Below, piece by piece: positions 227 through 10,000 of a DNA stretch of 64,000 bases. Source of the DNA: Epithemia pelagica (lineage: Eukaryota > Protista > Bacillariophyta); NCBI GenBank assembly GCA_946965045.2, contig OX337228.1, positions 4,092,001 through 4,156,000 of the forward strand, in the 5' to 3' direction. The notes beneath the pieces are model-generated. The model did not search any database. It saw nothing but the letters and a program-made list of their open reading frames with translations, and was not told where the DNA came from. Numbering within the stretch: position 1 is the stretch's first letter; each line of letters starts with the position of its first letter. The position numbers and the translations under genes were made by a program.

Positions 227-821
227 GGTATTTTAAACTGTAACGTGTGTATCGGCTTGTTGTTGCTGTGTGATCCTACCCTTGTCAGTGGGCTGCACAA
301 AGTGCATCAACACCAGACCTTGCTCAATTGGAGCTACGCACTATACAGCGTGGATCTCTTCCTTCTTCGTTCGCTACTCGCTACATGGATCTTCTCTACT
401 GGATCGTCGACTTTTGTTGGGTACGAAAAAAGGTGGCTCAGTCGGCGTGCACGGGAGCGCTGACATATCATTCAAATCAATATCTGCGTAACATATATAT
501 TTATAATGTCGCGCGCCTCTTCCATTTAAAGAGCGCTACGCACCCATATTTTAGTAGTCCGTCCGTACTTCGTTCCGTAAACTACCAGTCATTCGGTGGT
601 GGTGGCAAAAGGTACCCTCGCCCTCGATCTTTTTGCCGTTTCGCGTTGAGTCGTCGAAAACAAGATCGACATTGAGACGACAACCAAACGAAGGACGACC
701 ATATCCCTCCAAAGATAAGAGAGTGGAAAGATCAGACTGAGAGAGAGAGAAAAAAGGTGGAAGATCATATTCAGTTTTATCCTTGTGTCGAAAAGCTGTT
801 GAAAGGTGCAGGGTTTGCGTC

Positions 822-3800
822 ATGTCCTTTTCGACGTCGGGCAGTGTGTTACCGCAACGTGATCAAACCACCAAAGACGCTGCAATCTCAAGATGGGGTC
901 CCAAAACTGACGAACCACCAAGAGAACAGGCAATAAGAATGGAGAGGTCTCCCAATACCAGCGACTTTGAGGATCTGGAACCTCTGGATGTCGAAGCCAA
1001 GGCTTCCCTTTTGGGTGCGACAACCAATGCAACCACGGCCGAACAATCTACCAAACCTCACGACGAAGATCCATTCCGAGAAAACAACATGCCTCCCACT
1101 CCACTGGATCTCTCCAACACTAACAATGCAGACCAGCCTTCGCGAAAGCGAAAGAATCCGTCACCACGGACGCCTCCGTCCAGTTCGACCGTCAAGAACG
1201 ACATTCCCACCACATGCGCGGTGGTACCTGGCAAGGCGATTCCAATAGAAAAATATTTGGCAGATTTTCGCCTACTAGAAGAGGTAGAATGGGGACCCCG
1301 CCGCGACGAAGATGGCTATGATTCCGATCAACCCTTGGCGCCTCGGCCCAAAACACGCCATACGGAGGAAATATGCAACTGTCATACACCACCGGCTGGT
1401 CAAAAATGGACCTGCCGTAGTGATGATTGTATCAACTACGCATGTCGTGAAGAATGTAGAAGAATTAACTGCATCGAGAAGTGTGGCAATCAACGATTAT
1501 CCCGACGAGAATTCAAACAGGTCGAGGTTTTTGATGCTGGACCAAAGGGATATGGACTCCGTGTTTTGGAGGATTGTGTCAGGGGTGATATAATCCAAGA
1601 GTACACTGGTCAGGCCGTTCGGGAAAGCTCCCTCGCGAAGCTCTTTCGTTCCTATCAGCAAGAGCGTCGGCTCTATATCATGGCACTCGATGACAAGGTC
1701 TTTCTCGATGCTAGAAAGGCTGGGGGCTTGGCCCGCTTTATCAACCACTCGTGCAATCCCAATTGTAAAGTCGAAAAGTGGAGGGTCAAAGGCATTTACC
1801 GGGCAGCTGTCGAAGCACTGCGTGACATCAAGGCAGGGACAGAGCTCACCTTTGACTACCAATGGAGCCGAAAGATTGGGCGTGCTCCGACCAAATGTTA
1901 TTGCGGCGAACCCAACTGTCGAGGCACCCTCGAAATTAGCCGGTCGGTCGAAGAAGTGCAATTAGAACGGCTTCTTTCGGGAAACTGGATCGCACCAAAA
2001 CACAAACGAGCTGATGAACGGATTGTAAACCGCACTATTCGTATTCAACAGAGACCGCCTAGTCACAAAGAAGGGCAGGACAACCCGGAACCCTTTTATT
2101 CCGTCGCCGAAATCACAGACTACAATCATGAAACCAAACTACATCGAATTTTGCATGCTGACTTGGAAGAGCGATGGGAAGATCTCAATGGGGGTGAATT
2201 TGAATGGATGCTTTTGGATGAAGAACTTAGCCCTTCGCGGGCCAACGCCATTGCTCGGAAAAAAGCTCCTTCCTACGCTGGGCCTTCTTCGACAACGTCT
2301 TCTATGGACCATGCGACCAAAGTCAACTCTGGAGGAGGAAGTCTCTTGACGGCCTTCTCATCCAGAGAGAAAAACCAGAATGAGCATCTCTTTTACCTTT
2401 ATATCCAAACACCCATTAAAGAAGCCATGTTTACACAATCCAACAGCTTGAAAGAACGGGTAGAACGCAATTGCCAAGTGTCTATTACGTTACAACAACA
2501 AGCTCGACCACCCCTGCCCTACAATACTGACGATCCTGAAGATGTCACCAAGTTTGCCGCTTTGGATCAATCCTTCGATGGGACTGTTTGGAAAATTTCC
2601 ATATCTGGAAGCGACAAGGATGTTGCCAAAGCGCATGCTTCCCTTTCCAAAAATGTACAATACTGGCAAAAACGACAACAACAAAACGACGATCTACAAA
2701 AGACGCTGCCACTCCATGCAGTGGGGCAACCGGCAATGGTTTCGGGCGCCAGGGGTGATGAGTCCACTAAACTCACCGACGAGGTGATCCTTCCACGTGC
2801 AGTCGTCGACCTCTTCAAGAGGAAACTACCCTCTGTTCGAGAACGATGTCGCAATGTATCAATCCAAATTACACCGTCTGAAAGCAAATCAAAACTAATT
2901 GCTCGGTTACTGTTGGAAGGAAGCTTGCAAACGGACCTTCAGAATGCTCGAATACATATCCGTAATGCCATGATTGCCATATGCAAGGATTTGCCACAAC
3001 ATGATCCGCTCCCCATGGTCAACCTTGGAAATGGAGACAAAATTCCTCGCGATTTTGGTTTTTTGGGTGGGTCGCTTTCCAAGGAAGAGTTTGAATCGTT
3101 GCTCCAGAACAGCAGCATGGCTTTAGGAAGGAATGCGTCGGTTCCAAACGGTCATGGCGCCATTGGACCATCCGACCCTGCAACAGCGGTAATTCGTTCC
3201 AAACAAAAGGAGTTGTCGATGGCCTCTGAAGAGCTTCACCAATCACCTTTTTTCACGAAATTTGAGGCAATGTATGGCCCTCTCTGGATACAATCCGAAG
3301 ACGACATGGGCCGTATCAACGGCAAGAACCAATTGGTGGGCGACGCCACTACGACACAACAGCGCAAAGTCTACTTTGGGTGTGAGCCCAAGAATATAGC
3401 GTTGCGTTGGGCTCTGATTCACAAACGTGCACGTGACATCGTGAAAGGAGTTCGATATATCTACCTGGGATCCGATCATATCTATCTAAGATATCTGCAG
3501 CAAGGCAATTTTTTTGAGTTTGCGCTTCAAACAACGGGTGCAACAATTATGGTTGATCAATCGACCGGAAACCATTTAGTGGTGGATGGAACTTTAAAAG
3601 GCGCTGTGTTTGATGATTCTTTGCCATTACGTGTACAACGCATGACGCCAGTGGAACGAGCAGATCTTGCCGAGGAGCTTTTGGTACTCCAAATTGAAGT
3701 GTACCGGGACCATTTTACTAGGCAGGAGAGTTGGATCTTTGGTCGTGATTGGACAACAATCAATTTTGTCGACGAAGAACCGGTACCAGACAACTTGAAG

Positions 3801-6530
3801 CAAATCGCCGCATCATTTGGTCAACTCGACATGCGGTCGGCTCCTCACAGTTGCATGGAGATCTCTGAGGTGGTCGCTCATCTGGATCTACCAAGTTCTG
3901 TGGCCGCCCATGCTGCCATTATCCTTTATCGATTCGTGGCAGTTGCCACCGATACGCAAATGAAAGCACGTGATTCTGTCTTGGCATGTGTGTTTATTGC
4001 AAACAAGGCACAAAAGATCAAAAGATGGAAACGACTAGAGGTCGTTCTTGAAGCAGGGTACAAGACATTTTACCCCGGCACTCATTTCGACTCCGAGAAG
4101 GAGGAAGTGGTTAAGCTACAGCAGAGAGTCCTAGCTGCAGAACAGGAATTGTTAACAACTCTCGAATATGACGTTTTTGTCAGAGGCATGGATTCATTGG
4201 AGGATGCCGTGACTCATAATGGAGGATTTGCAGATTCGGTTTTCAGTTTGGCGTTCTGTGGACAAGTCCTGGGGGCTGGGGCAAACTTGTGGCTCAAACA
4301 TGGTATTGAGTACATCTTTGCTGCTTCAGCAGCCGTTCTGAAAGCGGACCTAAAAAGGCTTGTCACAACTCTGGGGCTTATTCCAATCAAGGTGTCGACA
4401 ACGCTAGAATTGATTGCAGAAAACGCGAGATATGGAAAGCCAACCTGCGACAAAGTTCCATCAAACCCACTTCTGGAAGGCGATAGGACACGGCTAACAA
4501 AACACATTCCTCGAGTCACTCAATCGTGCAACCTCCTTGCTATTGAAATTGCACAAAATCAATCAACTGATCTCTCGTCGGACCGCCTCAATGACTTACA
4601 TGTGAGCAAATCTAACCTCTGTGTTGCAATAAGAGGGGTTTCACATCAGGTTGTTGTCGACCAGATTATTGACCGGTTAGAAGGAATTGAAATGGAAAGT
4701 GGGTGTCTAATGTTTCTATGTCCGTCCGCTTCGGTTCCCCATACTGTCGACATACGAATCCGGGGTCCATGGCAGTCAGTTGCTATAGCAGACTTCCTTC
4801 TGAGGTCACATGAAGGAACTTCGTCCATTCCTTCTCTTGAAGAGGAAATGCATGAAGCATTCTCATTGAAAATACACGCGAAAACACGTGCTGGATTGGT
4901 TGATGCAAGAGAACTTTGTACATCGAATGGGTGGGGAGGGACCCTGAATCCACTTGGAAACAAAGACCATGTCGAGAAACAACTCGGAGGGAAAAGCTGT
5001 CTCGCTGGCAAACTGTCATCCAATGCACTCAAAGTATCAGGTTTGAGATGGTGGATCCGGCGGACGAAGGGGTTATCCTCAACAGGGTCCATCACCGAAA
5101 TGCTCTCGACAAGAATTGGAGACGGCCATAAATTAGAAGATCTTTCTAAATTGGCTAAGTCTATGGAAGACGAAGATCTTTTCCCAGTGCTTGCATCCCT
5201 TGAGAAGACCAAATCCAAGAAGGATGCAGAAACGCAAAACACATGTCCTCATGTGGCAGTTTCCATGCAACGATGGCCATCAGAAAAAGTAAGCGCAAAG
5301 GAACAGAAACGGTCAAAAAAGTCAACAAAGAAATCCATGGAAATCGGTTTCTCTGCAGGTGCTCTCCAAGAGATGCAGCTTCTTACGATGTTACACAAGC
5401 TTGTACCTTCTCCCCATGGCCATCCAAATTTCATTCTTCCGGTTGGCATTGCAATCCCTCTGGGTGAAGAACAAACCGAACCCCCTCCAACCACATTTGA
5501 AGGTGACGACCCCATGTTCTCACTGTTCAAGACGACCCAGGAAAATGAATCTGCAGCATGGAAAGAAAAGAAAGTAAAGAGTTCGCCGCATTTGGTCTTT
5601 CAACCCTGTCCCTTTGTTCTTCAGCGTTTCTTGTCGCGGAAGAACAACGAAGTTGATCTTTTGGAAGCTTCGTCAGTCTTGTCGTCATGGTTCAACGACC
5701 TGGTATTGGCTCTTGTGCACTGCCATTCAAACAATATCATCTTACGCAACCTTCAACCCGATCAAGTTATCATAGATCGCAGTGGCGTTGTGAAGCTGAG
5801 CAGTTTTTACCGGGCCACCGTACTTGGCGTGGAGGATCGCCGTCATCCCCCCACCATAAACAGTGTTCTCAAAGAAATAAAAAAGAAAGGAAGTTCGAAA
5901 AAGAAGGACGAAGACGATGACGTATCAATTAATCCTTTTGTACCACCAGAGATTCTTCTTGGAAGTCCCAAGTTCACCAAAGAATCGGATGTGTGGGTCG
6001 TGGGATGTATCTTGGCAAATATTCTTTTGGGCAAACCACCGTTTGTTGGAAAGGACAAGCATTCGCTGCTCACATCAATGTACAAAATAGTTGGCATTCC
6101 AGGACCGGAAAACTTTGAAGGGGCAGTTCGGTTTCCAAACTTTGTTAAGCCTACGAAGAAGTACAAGCGTGGTGTGCAAAAAGCTATGGGGCACATGGTT
6201 AAAAGCGATTATGCTTCTAGATACATCAAGGCAATTGATCTTGTGTCGAGAATGTTACATTTGGATCCGATGGAGAGATGCTCGGCCAAAGAAGCGTTGG
6301 ATCATGAGTTTCTCCGAGAGCATCGGGAAAAGATCAAGGGAAGTACATTTCGCCAATCCTACGTCTCAGAGTGGATGGGACTGAAGAGTAGCATCGTTCA
6401 AAGCAGCAGATACTCAAACGGTGACTCAAATGCGCAATCCCAGAGGCGGAGAACACTTATGTTAGCGACGGCCACCGGAGGAGACAGCAATGATGAAAAC
6501 GAAGATGGACTATATAACTTTGAACTCTGA
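822..6530 (+). CDS. Multidomain protein: AWS-SET-postSET (Set2/ASH1-type H3K36 methyltransferase-like), cyclin T/K-like box and C-terminal CDK9-like pseudokinase
   Basis: Single uninterrupted ORF (first ATG 822). AWS cysteines (CNC...C..DDCINYACREEC), SET motifs GPKGYGL, RFINHSCNPNC and ELTFDY, and postSET CYCGEPNCRG at ~1370-1935. Cyclin box (LPSSVAAHAAIILYRF...LACVFIANK...EQELLTTLEYDV) at ~3840-4350. Kinase fold (GFSAGALQEMQLL, PPEILLG, DVWVVGCI, MLHLDPMERCSAKEALDHEF) at ~5250-6320. Confidence 0.85.
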   Translation: MSFSTSGSVLPQRDQTTKDAAISRWGPKTDEPPREQAIRMERSPNTSDFEDLEPLDVEAKASLLGATTNATTAEQSTKPHDEDPFRENNMPPTPLDLSNTNNADQPSRKRKNPSPRTPPSSSTVKNDIPTTCAVVPGKAIPIEKYLADFRLLEEVEWGPRRDEDGYDSDQPLAPRPKTRHTEEICNCHTPPAGQKWTCRSDDCINYACREECRRINCIEKCGNQRLSRREFKQVEVFDAGPKGYGLRVLEDCVRGDIIQEYTGQAVRESSLAKLFRSYQQERRLYIMALDDKVFLDARKAGGLARFINHSCNPNCKVEKWRVKGIYRAAVEALRDIKAGTELTFDYQWSRKIGRAPTKCYCGEPNCRGTLEISRSVEEVQLERLLSGNWIAPKHKRADERIVNRTIRIQQRPPSHKEGQDNPEPFYSVAEITDYNHETKLHRILHADLEERWEDLNGGEFEWMLLDEELSPSRANAIARKKAPSYAGPSSTTSSMDHATKVNSGGGSLLTAFSSREKNQNEHLFYLYIQTPIKEAMFTQSNSLKERVERNCQVSITLQQQARPPLPYNTDDPEDVTKFAALDQSFDGTVWKISISGSDKDVAKAHASLSKNVQYWQKRQQQNDDLQKTLPLHAVGQPAMVSGARGDESTKLTDEVILPRAVVDLFKRKLPSVRERCRNVSIQITPSESKSKLIARLLLEGSLQTDLQNARIHIRNAMIAICKDLPQHDPLPMVNLGNGDKIPRDFGFLGGSLSKEEFESLLQNSSMALGRNASVPNGHGAIGPSDPATAVIRSKQKELSMASEELHQSPFFTKFEAMYGPLWIQSEDDMGRINGKNQLVGDATTTQQRKVYFGCEPKNIALRWALIHKRARDIVKGVRYIYLGSDHIYLRYLQQGNFFEFALQTTGATIMVDQSTGNHLVVDGTLKGAVFDDSLPLRVQRMTPVERADLAEELLVLQIEVYRDHFTRQESWIFGRDWTTINFVDEEPVPDNLKQIAASFGQLDMRSAPHSCMEISEVVAHLDLPSSVAAHAAIILYRFVAVATDTQMKARDSVLACVFIANKAQKIKRWKRLEVVLEAGYKTFYPGTHFDSEKEEVVKLQQRVLAAEQELLTTLEYDVFVRGMDSLEDAVTHNGGFADSVFSLAFCGQVLGAGANLWLKHGIEYIFAASAAVLKADLKRLVTTLGLIPIKVSTTLELIAENARYGKPTCDKVPSNPLLEGDRTRLTKHIPRVTQSCNLLAIEIAQNQSTDLSSDRLNDLHVSKSNLCVAIRGVSHQVVVDQIIDRLEGIEMESGCLMFLCPSASVPHTVDIRIRGPWQSVAIADFLLRSHEGTSSIPSLEEEMHEAFSLKIHAKTRAGLVDARELCTSNGWGGTLNPLGNKDHVEKQLGGKSCLAGKLSSNALKVSGLRWWIRRTKGLSSTGSITEMLSTRIGDGHKLEDLSKLAKSMEDEDLFPVLASLEKTKSKKDAETQNTCPHVAVSMQRWPSEKVSAKEQKRSKKSTKKSMEIGFSAGALQEMQLLTMLHKLVPSPHGHPNFILPVGIAIPLGEEQTEPPPTTFEGDDPMFSLFKTTQENESAAWKEKKVKSSPHLVFQPCPFVLQRFLSRKNNEVDLLEASSVLSSWFNDLVLALVHCHSNNIILRNLQPDQVIIDRSGVVKLSSFYRATVLGVEDRRHPPTINSVLKEIKKKGSSKKKDEDDDVSINPFVPPEILLGSPKFTKESDVWVVGCILANILLGKPPFVGKDKHSLLTSMYKIVGIPGPENFEGAVRFPNFVKPTKKYKRGVQKAMGHMVKSDYASRYIKAIDLVSRMLHLDPMERCSAKEALDHEFLREHREKIKGSTFRQSYVSEWMGLKSSIVQSSRYSNGDSNAQSQRRRTLMLATATGGDSNDENEDGLYNFEL

Positions 6531-6797
6531 CTTACTCATTCGCGTCGATAGTACAAGGTTTGGAACTCCACACATGGTCCTATGGTGATACTCGATACAT
6601 AGGTGCCGGGTGCTGGGGGAGTCCCAACTTCATAAATTTGTTGGTTTGGAGAGTGCATCAAAAATTAAGTTCATAGGTCGGGGAAATATATAAATATGGG
6701 AACGTCTTTTGCGATACTTCGTTTGTAAATTGTACATTTAAATAGAAGGAGCTGGAGCGATCGTTGTGTCCTTTAAACATGCTTATTTATCTTACTA

Positions 6798-9700
6798 TTA
6801 GAGATCTAACATGTGGCGTATGACTGCTTTTTGAACTTCCATTGGGTGATGATCTAAATCATGTGACCGAATATCGGCAATCTTTGCATCTCTAGTCGTC
6901 TGTGACAGTGTAATCTTATCCCTTTTTCGGGCATTTTCCATTACGAAGGCACGCGCCAAGCCACGGGACAGATATCCCCTAAGCTCTTGAATCTCTTCGT
7001 CTAGATCGACATCCGACCTGTGGAGTATGGACACTTGCATGAGGGTTTCCATCAAAACGCGGATTCCTCGCGAATCAAACGCCGAAACAGGATCCATGCA
7101 ATTGGGGTCCTGGCACTCCTCTTCCCTCAAAATTTCCTTTGCCACTAACAAAAGCAGCCACTGAAAGGACTTGAACAGCAACCGTCCTGCCGGTCCCTTG
7201 CGTTCTTCCAAACACGCAAGGATTTGCTTTGCCACCAAATTGTTATCCCTATCAATAACGAAAGCTTCAACCACTGCATGGATACGAAACATGACTTGAA
7301 CTTCCCTGCTTTCGGTCAAGAAGGAGGAGGATCCATATTGAGTCAAGTAATTTCGTAACGTGCTGGTGACTGCCGTTGTGTCGTTATAGGTTTCTCCATA
7401 GGACGTCGCTGCATCCTTGTTGCTGTTGCCACCTGTCAAAAGAGACAATAGGTTGCTTGTCGATACTGTACAAAAACTACAAAGGGTACGGTAACAAGAC
7501 CCTCGTCCTTCCACAACCACAGTAGCAGTGTCATCACCGCCAATCATCTTTACGCGACAGTCAATGCCTTGCAAGAGCCAGGAAATGGCAATACCGGGTT
7601 GTCCTTTTCCCTCCCAGTAGTGCCGATAGCGACATAATGCCACAGCTTCACAGGCTTCCACAAGTACCACGTTTCGATGAGCACCATTCCCACCACCTAC
7701 CCTGGCATTGTTACGAATATTCGTCATTGCACCAGAATTAACGTTGATGTCCATAGTGGCCTGAACTAGGTTCAAGACTTGTTGCGCCCCGGCATCGGAA
7801 TGTGGATCGTATCGATGCAACAACTGCTCCACGAAGGATAGAACTTCTTCCTCAGTGTCCGTGTCGTCCCCGTTGTCCTTATCGCCATTCACAATATAGG
7901 GAAGCAATAACTGGAGTGCTAGACTTGTGGCCGTATCCTTCTTGTCCGTCAAGGAGGATACAATGGCTTCGGCGGCTTGACAGAGAACCTCTGGTTGCCT
8001 GTAGCCCGCACCATCCGGTGACAAAATGTTAGCATCCAGGTACAAACTATGCATTACCGCCAGCTGTTAGCCAATTCAAGAAAAAACGAGTCAGAGTGAG
8101 AGAAATCATGAAAGAGGAGGGTACAGTACGACTTTCCCTTCTTTTTCTCTGGAATCGGGACTTACCAATGTGGCAGGTAGGGCAGCCCCTGAAGCCCCTC
8201 CCAACTGATTCAACACATGAAGACATTGACTGATTCGTCCTTCCATAATGTCCAAGAGAACTTGATCTCCGGCATCCATGAAACTCGTTGTTTCTGCGCC
8301 CTTGTCCAACCTTGTCGCAGCATGTTTAATGCATTTCATGGCCACGTCATGGGCATGTCGTGGTTTCAAATACGGTAATTGATACAACAATTTGGCACAC
8401 ATATGTTCGGCCCAACACGTCCAAGGAACATAGACCTTTTGAATCATGCGGGTTTCGTCCCCGCTAATCATCGTATCGTGATCTTCCTCATGCCAACGTC
8501 CCAACATAATTTTGAAAATGCGTTGCAATTGTGGAATGCGATTGGAGAGCCGAGTGATTGGATGAGTGGCCGAGGAAAGGACATGGACTTGAAGGTATTC
8601 TTGCCAGGTTGCGTGTTTCCGCATCGCTGCCTCCGGAACAAAGTCAACCGGAAAGTCCTCTCGAATGGTACGGGAGGAGTCCCCGCCGCCCCCTAGTTCC
8701 CAAAGACGATAATCGTGTTCCGATACACGCAATCCACGAACATACCAATCCACATTCACATTCCATTCGTCGTAGCCGTTAGTTTCGTCGTCGTCGTCCG
8801 GATCATCGTTGAGAAACGAGTGGTGATAGGGAGGAGGACAAAGTTGGTCATCGTATGCATCTGTTCGTCCTCCGGGAAGAGGCGCCAAAGACAAGAGTCG
8901 TTTCAAACTTGCAAACCCACGAACAAGTTCCAGGGCCGTGTTGTGAAGCGAAGTTTCATCGTCCTTGTCCTGAGTGTTATTTTCCATTTCTTGGCTCTGT
9001 TGATGCAACAAAGCCTTGGCCTGTTGGTACAAAGAGTGGCGTTGCAAGGCATCCCATGCTTGCTCCAGACACCCTCGCAATACACACGCTTCGACATAGG
9101 CCCAATACAAGGACCCGGACGAAGCATTGTCAAGAGGCATTGACGACTCGTAGAGTTCTGGTTGTGTAGCTTCTAGCATTTCAAGCCAATCGGCCTGGTG
9201 CAAGACCGGAGAATCGAAATGGTAGCGTAAGAAGCGAACCAATGGAGCTGTGACTGCACCGGGCATATGAAAGGCATCAGTTCCGCTAAAGGACAACCAC
9301 GGATTGCCAGTGATTATCGCCTTCTCCGCCGCGAGGGAGCGACCAGTCCACGGTGGAGACATGAGAAGTGGAAAAAAGATATCGGATAAATGTATCACTT
9401 GCATGGACAATTTCAAAAACTCTTGATTGCGATGTGATGTCACAGCACTGTCCTTCTCGTTGCCAGCCTCTACAGAATTTGGTCGGTCGTTTTGTTGTTC
9501 TTCCTTCTCCCACCCTTCCAAACACTCTTGAATGGCCTTCCGACAAGTCTCACTCAACATTCGATCTCCCTCACTGCGTAATTGGCAACCACCGCCATCT
9601 TGTTTGTACTCCTTGTGCGCATGGAGGATCTTGATCAAGGCCGCCAATTCGTGCGCATTGCAGCCCGATGCATCTGACCGAATGGTATTCATATCAAGAC

Positions 9701-9824
9701 CCAATGGTTGGGACCCATTGGCGTCCTTTCCATCTTTCCTCGGATCTTCGACAGGATCATATACCGTCAACTGGGCAGGACACCAGGGATCCCACGCTAA
9801 TAATCGCTTTCCTTGTCGCATCAT
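6798..9824 (-). CDS. NUP85: Nucleoporin Nup85-like protein; 2 exons, intron 8064-8165
   Basis: ORFs 8106..9953 and 6798..8054 join in frame via GTAAGT donor (8165) and CTAACAG acceptor (8064). YWAYVEACVLRGCLEQAWDALQRH resembles the Nup85 conserved block. All-helical composition. Confidence 0.65.
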
Positions 9825-10000
9825 GGTGCGGCTGATTTTGGGTTGCGCGATTTTGTGTTCGGGCCATGCTGATTTTGGGGGGAGAAAGAATGTAAGATGG
9901 AAACAACGGGGCAATGATCCACAAAAAGATGAACTCACGCACCCCCTCTTCATGTACTGGTAGCATACATAGAAAATCGAAATGGAGCACGTCGACTATT

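Follow-up and report, generated by a model that had tools for sequence, protein, structure and literature searches.

We analysed a stretch of 64,000 nucleotides from the diatom Epithemia pelagica (GenBank assembly GCA_946965045.2, contig OX337228.1, positions 4,092,001 to 4,156,000 of the forward strand), which is called the window here and supplies the nucleotide numbering used below. Near its start lies a gene for a protein that combines an apparently active histone methyltransferase of the Set2/NSD/ASH1 class with a double cyclin box and with a predicted cyclin-dependent kinase (CDK) fold that has lost its catalytic residues. An earlier note, made by inspection of the sequence, had described the gene as a single open reading frame (ORF) without introns at 822-6530, and this description holds: the frame on the + strand runs from 783 to 6530, has its first ATG at 822, and continues for 5.7 kb as 1902 amino acids (aa) and a stop codon with no internal stop. 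The gene is present in one copy in the 60.5-Mb assembly. The features on which the argument depends are the following.

822..6530, + strand: whole coding sequence, 1902 aa, no intron evident, 197 full-length homologues
1371..1931, + strand: AWS-SET-postSET catalytic unit, aa 184-370 (PDB sequence matches, Set2 best)
1548-1862, + strand: Pfam SET match, aa 243-347 (E 7e-20)
3735..4493, + strand: double cyclin box, aa 972-1224 (Pfam, profile, AlphaFold2, Foldseek and VIA)
3861-4175, + strand: Pfam Cyclin_N match, aa 1014-1118 (E 2.5e-5; 24.4 bits, a small margin over the curated cut-off of 23)
5223..6398, + strand: CDK-fold pseudokinase, aa 1468-1859 (Pfam, PDB profile and Foldseek)
5253..5264, + strand: VAVS in place of VAxK, the ATP-anchoring Lys replaced by Ser (Ser in 118/120)
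5346..5384, + strand: putative PSTAIRE-equivalent alphaC helix, GFSAGALQEMQLL (near-invariant in the family; helical in the model, model residues 528-542)
5742..5750, + strand: LRN in place of HRD (Asp position never D in the 120 sequences or in divergent relatives)
5802..5810, + strand: SFY in place of DFG (Asp position never D in the 120 sequences or in divergent relatives)

When aa 184-370 were compared with the PDB, the 35 best sequences were Set2, ASH1L, NSD1-3 and SETD2 (1.5e-40 to 2e-30), led by Chaetomium Set2 (6nzo_S, 1.5e-40) and including ASH1L (5e-39), NSD1 (2e-37), yeast Set2 (3e-34) and SETD2 (3e-33). Enzymes for lysine 4 or lysine 9 of histone H3 (H3K4, H3K9) gave far weaker scores than this lysine 36 (H3K36) class. 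The matches place the methyltransferase, which the earlier note had called an AWS-SET-postSET unit of the Set2 type, in the H3K36-type KMT3 class, with the Set2, NSD and ASH1 branches not separated. The NHSC motif, the tyrosine of FDY and the zinc-binding cysteines of the post-SET segment are invariant in 116 of 116 orthologues (residue counts here and below are taken from 120 aligned family members, and those for the SET region from the 116 that cover it). Because of this invariance the SET domain appears to be under selection for catalysis and, its catalytic motifs being intact, the methyltransferase is apparently active.

With Set2 and SETD2 (KMT3A) the protein shares the AWS-SET-postSET core, including the intact NHSC, FDY and post-SET elements, and Set2 is the best match in the PDB; it differs from them in having neither an SRI nor a WW domain and in its C-terminal two thirds, which are made up of Tudor, KH-like, cyclin and pseudokinase domains. 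The catalytic core is about equally similar to that of NSD1-3 and ASH1L (KMT2H/KMT3B class), which likewise carry a chromatin-reader domain, but the PWWP, PHD, BAH and bromo domains of those proteins are absent from the diatom protein. The genome also contains a second KMT3-type gene (L002, G000:C1:1189876-1193433), with NSD-like PHD fingers in one ORF (21-956) and an AWS-SET unit in another (1036-2445); the two ORFs probably belong to a single gene, interrupted by a short intron or by a shift of frame, and this AWS-SET is 39% identical to that of the window.

The C-terminal part has a Pfam Pkinase match at aa 1617-1831 (E 2.5e-21) that covers only model positions 97-263, that is, the C-lobe. 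In a profile search of the PDB the best matches were CDKs at about 1e-34, among them PfPK5, Pho85, a Cryptosporidium CDK, CDK3, CDK2 and CDK12/13, all within 10 bits. An AlphaFold2 (AF2) model of aa 985-1860 was made from a 36-sequence alignment (876 residues, mean predicted local distance difference test (pLDDT) 80.9, predicted template modelling (pTM) score 0.84), and the best 50 Foldseek matches of this model were all CDKs (CDK5, 2, 1, 12 and 3), with target template modelling scores of 0.68-0.77 over about 365 columns. Judged from the model, the whole bilobal CDK fold is present, and the CDK-type fold proposed in the earlier note is upheld by Pfam, PDB profile and Foldseek alike. Its further claim, that the kinase is CDK9-like, is not: the PDB scores of 112-122 bits across CDK1/2/3/5, Pho85, PfPK5 and CDK12/13 do not discriminate between subfamilies, CDK1/2/5 and Pho85 being about equal to CDK12/13, and CDK9 is absent among the best 60 PDB sequences of the family profile search. 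With scores of this kind and a long branch, assignment of the pseudokinase to a CDK subfamily was rejected; by sequence and fold it is a generic CDK.

Alignment to PfPK5 and CDKs sets LRNLQPDQ on HRDLKPxN and SFY on DFG, which means that substitutions affect the catalytic Asp and the Lys of the catalytic loop as well as the Asn that binds Mg and the Asp of DFG. No Gly-rich loop is found before the VAVS strand, where the AF2 model has helices and no beta1-beta2 hairpin. These departures (VAVS, LRN, SFY and the missing loop) had all been read correctly from the letters beforehand, with exact coordinates for LRN and SFY. They are not peculiar to the E. pelagica copy. Among the 120 aligned sequences the VAxK Lys position is Ser in 118, Ala in 1 and Thr in 1; the HRD Asp position is S in 40, T in 40, N in 24 and A in 6, with others but never D; the catalytic-loop Lys position holds Q, L, N and others, and K once; the Mg-binding Asn position is Q in 103 and N once; and the DFG Asp position is G in 65, S in 35 and A in 9, with others and again no D. 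What is retained is the Glu of APE (117/120) and the Arg of HRD (114/120). The more divergent relatives retrieved by a family profile (P0258/P0323/P0219, P0280-82, P0191 and P0262) also lack the same catalytic residues, and a true CDK12 aligned together with them keeps HRD and DFG. Whether orthologues retain HRD and DFG had been raised as a question for this gene, and in neither set is an Asp present at these positions. The catalytic loss therefore appears to be family-wide and ancient, and the copy in the window not merely degenerate. With the Gly-rich loop, the VAxK Lys, the HRD and DFG Asp and the Mg-binding Asn all lost, the CDK-fold domain is predicted to be incapable of transferring phosphate.

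Could the kinase nevertheless be an atypical one, active through non-canonical residues as WNK or CASK is? The fold is complete, the APE motif and the HRD Arg are kept, and the nearly uniform Ser at the VAxK Lys indicates that this position is constrained. However, five independent elements of catalysis are gone together (Gly-rich loop, VAxK Lys, HRD Asp, the Lys/Asn of the catalytic loop, and DFG Asp), and the residues at the Asp positions vary (S/T/N/A in one, G/S/A in the other) with no compensating residue conserved. Because the replaced positions vary freely among orthologues, no catalytic constraint seems to be left on them, and this argues against an atypical active kinase, which we regard as very improbable.

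The full-length search retrieved 197 proteins that share the layout from SET to Pkinase and are 1100-2250 aa long. All named sources are diatoms, namely Epithemia clementina, Nitzschia, Seminavis, Amphora, Cylindrotheca, metagenome-assembled genomes of Bacillariaceae, and Cyclostephanos; the nearest named homologue is that of E. clementina (66% identity), and automatic annotations of the homologues read 'Protein kinase domain/SET domain'. Complete or near-complete ORFs are found in the transcriptomes of Cylindrotheca closterium, Extubocellulus spinifer (a polar centric) and Thalassionema nitzschioides (an araphid), and therefore in other diatoms a single transcript covers every domain. Over aa 150-1860 conservation has hardly a gap; the variable parts are the first 150 residues and some linkers. 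Both the fusion and the catalytic loss are thus shared across the homologues, a point on which the earlier note had wished for evidence. From these comparisons the protein would be the only E. pelagica orthologue in a family that extends across the diatoms, and more divergent relatives lie beyond that family.

The same observations bear on the explanation that the gene is an artefact, either two or three neighbouring genes read through as one or a decaying lineage-specific copy. No RNA run is recorded for Epithemia pelagica, which leaves room for such an explanation. It has to contend with a stop-free frame of 5.7 kb in a single-copy gene, with the same full-length architecture in more than 100 sequences, the ORFs from the transcriptomes of three diatoms among them, and with the near-continuous conservation from aa 150 to 1860. 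On this sequence evidence the artefact appears effectively refuted.

The cyclin part lies upstream of the pseudokinase. Thirty of the 36 orthologues examined have a Pfam Cyclin_N match at E<=0.05, the best at 1.5e-7. A search with the single sequence was marginal (cyclin T1, E 0.11); the 36-sequence profile, run against the whole PDB, retrieved cyclin T1 (1.6e-6 to 2e-5), cyclin L2 (1.4e-3) and nothing else. An AF2 model of aa 395-1470 shows two five-helix cyclin repeats. With Foldseek the best 15 matches of this part were cyclins T1 and T2, followed by K, H, L2, C and A. The Z scores from VIA-align were 17.2-18.3 for T1/T2, 17.4 for L2, 16.0-16.6 for K, 16.0 for Ctk2, 15.7 for cyclin D, 15.5 for C and 15.1 for A, so that less than one Z unit separates T from L2, and K is about 1.7 lower. 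The best cyclin T match extends over 221 residues (root mean square deviation 3.2) and both repeats, and takes in cyclin T1 residues 8-256. According to the model, the cyclin part is complete and belongs with the transcriptional cyclins, among which T is the nearest. The resemblance to cyclin T/K that had been seen in the letters is borne out by the profile (T1, 1.6e-6), by VIA (Z 18.3) and by Foldseek (T1/T2).

Three cyclin residues (R1037, K1062 and E1107) do not vary in any of the 120 sequences and occupy the places of the conserved Arg, Lys and Glu (AaK and lE positions) in the first repeat of cyclin T1. In the cyclin A-CDK2 complex the conserved Lys and Glu of the cyclin contact the kinase. 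On the side of the pseudokinase, the alphaC helix is among the most conserved stretches of the whole protein while the catalytic positions drift. The pTM of 0.84 for the 876 residues of cyclin, linker and kinase, as against 0.52 for the model of the upstream part, means that the predictor is confident of the relative placement of these domains. When cyclin and pseudokinase were submitted as two separate chains, the complex prediction scored 0.22 (mark 0.34), a result that counts neither for nor against binding. Weighing the model together with these residues, we think it probable that, within the chain, the cyclin box pairs with the pseudo-CDK and that the two form a permanently cyclin-bound, non-catalytic unit. 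A fused CDK-cyclin pair that has been dead since before the diatom radiation, with its presumed cyclin-contact helix under strong purifying selection, would be a clear natural example of a pseudokinase that is retained because of what its surfaces bind.

The known systems to compare with this unit are P-TEFb (CDK9-cyclin T1), CDK12/13-cyclin K and yeast CTDK-I. The diatom cyclin is closest to T1/T2, then to L2, K and Ctk2, and the kinase part has the CDK fold and, at the alphaC position, a helix that resembles the one in CDK12. In contrast to these complexes, the diatom protein carries both partners in one chain, with the cyclin before the kinase. Moreover, its kinase has neither the catalytic residues nor the Gly-rich loop and hence would not be a kinase of the C-terminal domain (CTD) of RNA polymerase II (Pol II), and CDK9 is no better a match to it than CDK1/2/5.

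The region between the methyltransferase and the kinase contains further domains, as listed here.

2010..2231, + strand: Tudor-like five-strand barrel, aa ~397-470 (profile and AF2 model)
2394..2702, + strand: KH-like domain 1, beta-alpha-alpha-beta-beta-alpha, aa 525-627, provisional (AF2 topology)
2772..2990, + strand: second small alpha/beta domain, beta-alpha-beta-beta-alpha, aa 651-723, provisional (AF2 pLDDT ~90; conserved in 120 sequences)
3246..3641, + strand: third conserved alpha/beta domain, aa 809-940 (AF2; occupancy 0.9-0.99 in orthologues)
4617..5141, + strand: linker domain between cyclin and kinase, beta-alpha-beta-beta-alpha core, aa 1266-1440 (AF2 models; conserved, with an LRWW motif)

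A profile of aa 395-1470 was searched against 1.8 billion representatives and gave about 50 strong family matches and two distant sets; the AF2 model of the same region has a pLDDT of 73.8 and a pTM of 0.52. The Tudor segment follows the post-SET directly, and the family profile matches multi-Tudor proteins of the metagenomic library (PTM/DIR17- and LBR-type repeats). Against the PDB, the profile of this segment finds the 66-aa Tudor chain 7de9_A at 6.4e-7, which we take to be a plant Tudor that binds H3K4me1; the likeness to the PTM/DIR17/PDS5 type lies in this match, and the diatom protein differs in having one copy only. In the AF2 model five strands at aa 405-464 (pLDDT ~90) form the Tudor barrel. 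A Pfam Tudor match was obtained in just 3 of 36 orthologues.

Between the Tudor and the cyclin there are three well-modelled alpha/beta domains (aa 525-627, 651-723 and 809-940). Foldseek matches the KH-like region to KH1-2 of IGF2BP3 (E ~1e-2), and Pfam KH_1 is found in 4 of 36 orthologues. Comparison by hhalign of the canonical KH of two divergent relatives (P0258/P0323) with the middle region of the family gave a weak match (E 0.055, probability ~1%), and no GxxG loop is evident in the KH-like domain of the window copy, in which the KH assignment is provisional. Pfam has no match on the third alpha/beta domain, nor on the linker domain at aa 1266-1440. The earlier note had spoken of a self-contained elongation module, a description that overlooks the Tudor, the KH-like folds and the linker domain brought out by profiles, AF2 and Foldseek.

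Some of the more divergent relatives are informative on the middle region. P0258 and P0323, which come from metagenome and MMETSP sources and are 1972-2470 aa long, contain AWS-SET, Tudor, a CCCH zinc finger, KH_1, Cyclin_N and a dead kinase; their KH_1 is unmistakable, with a GKxG loop, and lies together with the CCCH zinc finger between SET and cyclin. This layout suggests that the ancestral middle region bound RNA. By BLASTP of the P0258 middle region against the window protein, the cyclin region alone aligns (9e-13). A candidate SET-less variant with KH, cyclin and kinase (P0197, 984 aa) was rejected as probably a fragment, its 90% cluster including the 1972-aa P0258 with an N-terminal AWS-SET. 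A further group from NCBI assemblies (P0280-P0282 and P0328, about 1400 aa) has SET and a dead kinase, with VRS for HRD and GGL for DFG, and shows no Pfam cyclin match. One member of a P0280-82 cluster comes from the transcriptome set of the foraminiferan Bolivina argentea, and this lineage may lie outside the diatoms or may be a contaminant or symbiont of the foraminiferan sample.

Our overall explanation, which we consider probable, is that of a targeted or regulated H3K36-type writer, in which an intact methyltransferase of the Set2/NSD/ASH1 class is joined to a Tudor, KH-like domains, a cyclin T/K/L-like box, a linker domain and a dead CDK fold. The cyclin-pseudoCDK unit, together with the Tudor, may act as a docking or targeting device that sets where and when the SET domain methylates chromatin, although for this step we see the chances as evenly balanced. 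The ligand of such a device would most plausibly be a normal target of transcriptional CDKs, for example the Pol II CTD or an elongation factor; that it is the Pol II CTD specifically seems unlikely.

Several points weigh against this explanation. A single transcript in Epithemia pelagica is deduced from the open frame and the transcriptomes of other diatoms. Specificity for histones and for H3K36 is put forward from family membership only. The N-lobe of the pseudokinase, used alone as a profile, has no significant kinase match in the PDB; the assignment of the N-lobe rests on the match of the whole domain to the CDK fold. The earlier note had aligned the alphaC helix with that of CDK9; a near-invariant helix does stand at the alphaC position, and its consensus GFSxxALQEMQLL (GF..AL.E...L) resembles GFPITAIREIKIL in a database CDK12, but the N-lobe profile lends the resemblance to CDK9/12 no statistical support. 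Ancestry from CDK9/12 is weakly suggested: searches with the divergent relative P0258 retrieve CDK12s as the only true kinases, and the best-scoring active paralogue in the genome is the CDK12/13/9 orthologue (L009), in a soft ranking since its match span is longer and the E-values of the genome paralogues cover unequal spans.

How, then, might the methyltransferase be brought to its place? In yeast the recruitment of Set2 depends on serine 2 phosphorylation of the CTD by Ctk1. The pseudo-CDK-cyclin thus sits on a chromatin writer whose canonical recruitment needs the very class of kinase that it resembles. It could accordingly be supposed that a pseudo-P-TEFb binds the Pol II CTD as a substrate-trapping kinase, replaces SRI and couples H3K36 methylation to elongation without phosphorylation. 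This would agree with a cyclin closest to those of CTD kinases (T, K, L and Ctk2), with the well-conserved APE/P+1 region and CMGC C-lobe, and with the established dependence of yeast Set2 on Ctk1. It would agree, too, with the absence of the domains to be replaced. Pfam finds neither SRI nor WW in the window protein or in any of the 120 orthologues, and animal SETD2 matches in the same database carry both (PF08236 and PF00397); a six-frame search of the genome for SRI (PF08236) gave no match, in a search that had no positive control (the control genomes were prokaryotic and silent).

On the other side, the kinase domain is not specifically CDK9/12-like, its activation segment holds a long insert that is poorly modelled by AF2, the genome search for SRI lacks that positive control, and through its Tudor and KH-like domains the protein could reach chromatin or RNA in other ways. 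We therefore hold a CTD-binding pseudo-P-TEFb to be rather unlikely. The genome also encodes an active kinase of the CDK12/13/9 type (L009, G000:C2:3072072-3075716) in a 1300-aa open frame, with HRD and DFG present and matches to CDK12 at 1.3e-64 and CDK9 at 5e-62. Because of this kinase, the pseudo-module would be an addition to the transcriptional CDK machinery and not a replacement of it. Of the replacement of SRI/WW proposed in the earlier note, the absence of these domains is borne out in the 120 orthologues; at the level of the kinase nothing is replaced, since a separate active CDK12/13/9-like enzyme exists.

A wider form of the idea is that of a reader of the CTD or of an elongation factor, in which a dead copy of a CTD kinase would take over the job of SRI while the Tudor and the KH/CCCH-derived domains add input from histone marks and possibly from nascent RNA. 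We consider this doubtful as well. If true, it would be the first CDK-cyclin pair that serves recognition and not as an enzyme, and a stramenopile way of coupling H3K36 methylation to transcription.

Another possibility is that the module has nothing to do with Pol II. It could regulate the SET domain from within the chain, through autoinhibition or allostery, or could bind other partners, for instance CDK inhibitors or activators, RNA-processing factors or RNA. The targeting would then fall mainly to the Tudor and the KH/CCCH-type domains. Enzymes of the Set2, NSD and ASH1 types are known to be autoinhibited. Besides this established property, the points in favour are a conserved linker domain with no assigned fold, the position of the Tudor directly after the post-SET, and the canonical KH_1 (GKxG) and CCCH zinc finger between SET and cyclin in the divergent relatives. 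The KH-like folds of the diatom proteins, however, have no evident GxxG and a weak KH match, and the near-invariance of alphaC and of the cyclin Lys and Glu is most simply understood as a contact between cyclin and CDK, which agrees with either reading and lends this one no specific support. We give this module unrelated to Pol II a limited chance. Binding of the Pol II CTD is no more likely than a role directed at RNA or at a partner, or than regulation of SET from within.

A bare fusion of SET with a dead kinase has already been glimpsed in Phytophthora. In a kinome paper, one sentence on PITG_14137 of Phytophthora infestans states that a histone methyltransferase is joined to a CDK-like kinase without activity; P. 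ramorum and P. sojae are the only species from which orthologues of this structure are reported there (Judelson and Ah-Fong 2010, PMC3019232). We liken it to the diatom protein from the description in that paper alone, which does not mention a cyclin box, a Tudor or KH; among the relatives from our family searches no Phytophthora protein surfaced. The same paper reports CDK-cyclin fusions from oomycetes, ciliates and Theileria, such as PITG_21617, in which the change of the catalytic Asp to Asn is conserved across species, and reports them to be absent from diatoms (PMC3019232). They resemble the present case in having CDK and cyclin in one chain; there, however, the cyclin is C-terminal to the kinase and there is no SET. 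In a study of H3K36me3 in Phaeodactylum, 'lineage-specific motifs IV-VII' were noted, without explanation, for the SETD2 homologues of diatoms, and neither a kinase nor a cyclin was mentioned (PMC10421102). If the present family is a major H3K36 enzyme of diatoms, these motifs may be the Tudor, KH-like, cyclin T-like and pseudo-CDK domains. The literature was searched for the combined architecture, and nothing was found beyond PMC3019232 and automatic annotations; the cyclin T-like box, the Tudor and KH-like domains, the conservation across diatoms and the family-wide catalytic loss appear to be undescribed in the literature searched. The explanations considered above provide concrete hypotheses suited to genetically tractable diatoms such as P. 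tricornutum and T. pseudonana.

On the 3' side of the gene there are two ORFs on the - strand, one of 418 aa at 6798-8054, for which Pfam gives no match, and one of 615 aa at 8106-9953, which matches the nucleoporin Nup85 (6.6e-13). Neither has an evident functional tie to the SET gene.

Four public read runs contain the stretch; they belong to one study, none is recorded as RNA, and the comparison was made with contig-level data. The contigs are colinear with the window over 701-6700, with no joints. Those of run X3 span 701-6470, with none over 6501-6700, and the ends of the transcript are not readable from contigs. Contigs of run X4 have an extra GATC after 1987 and loose ends at 2534 and 5175; these GATC insertions and breaks are the signature of a Hi-C library and not variation of the gene. 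At window position 2521 the window has A (TAC, Tyr567), and the contigs of runs X1 and X4 as well as protein P0001 have G (TGC, Cys567); the difference lies within a poorly conserved linker and is either allelic or a consensus error.

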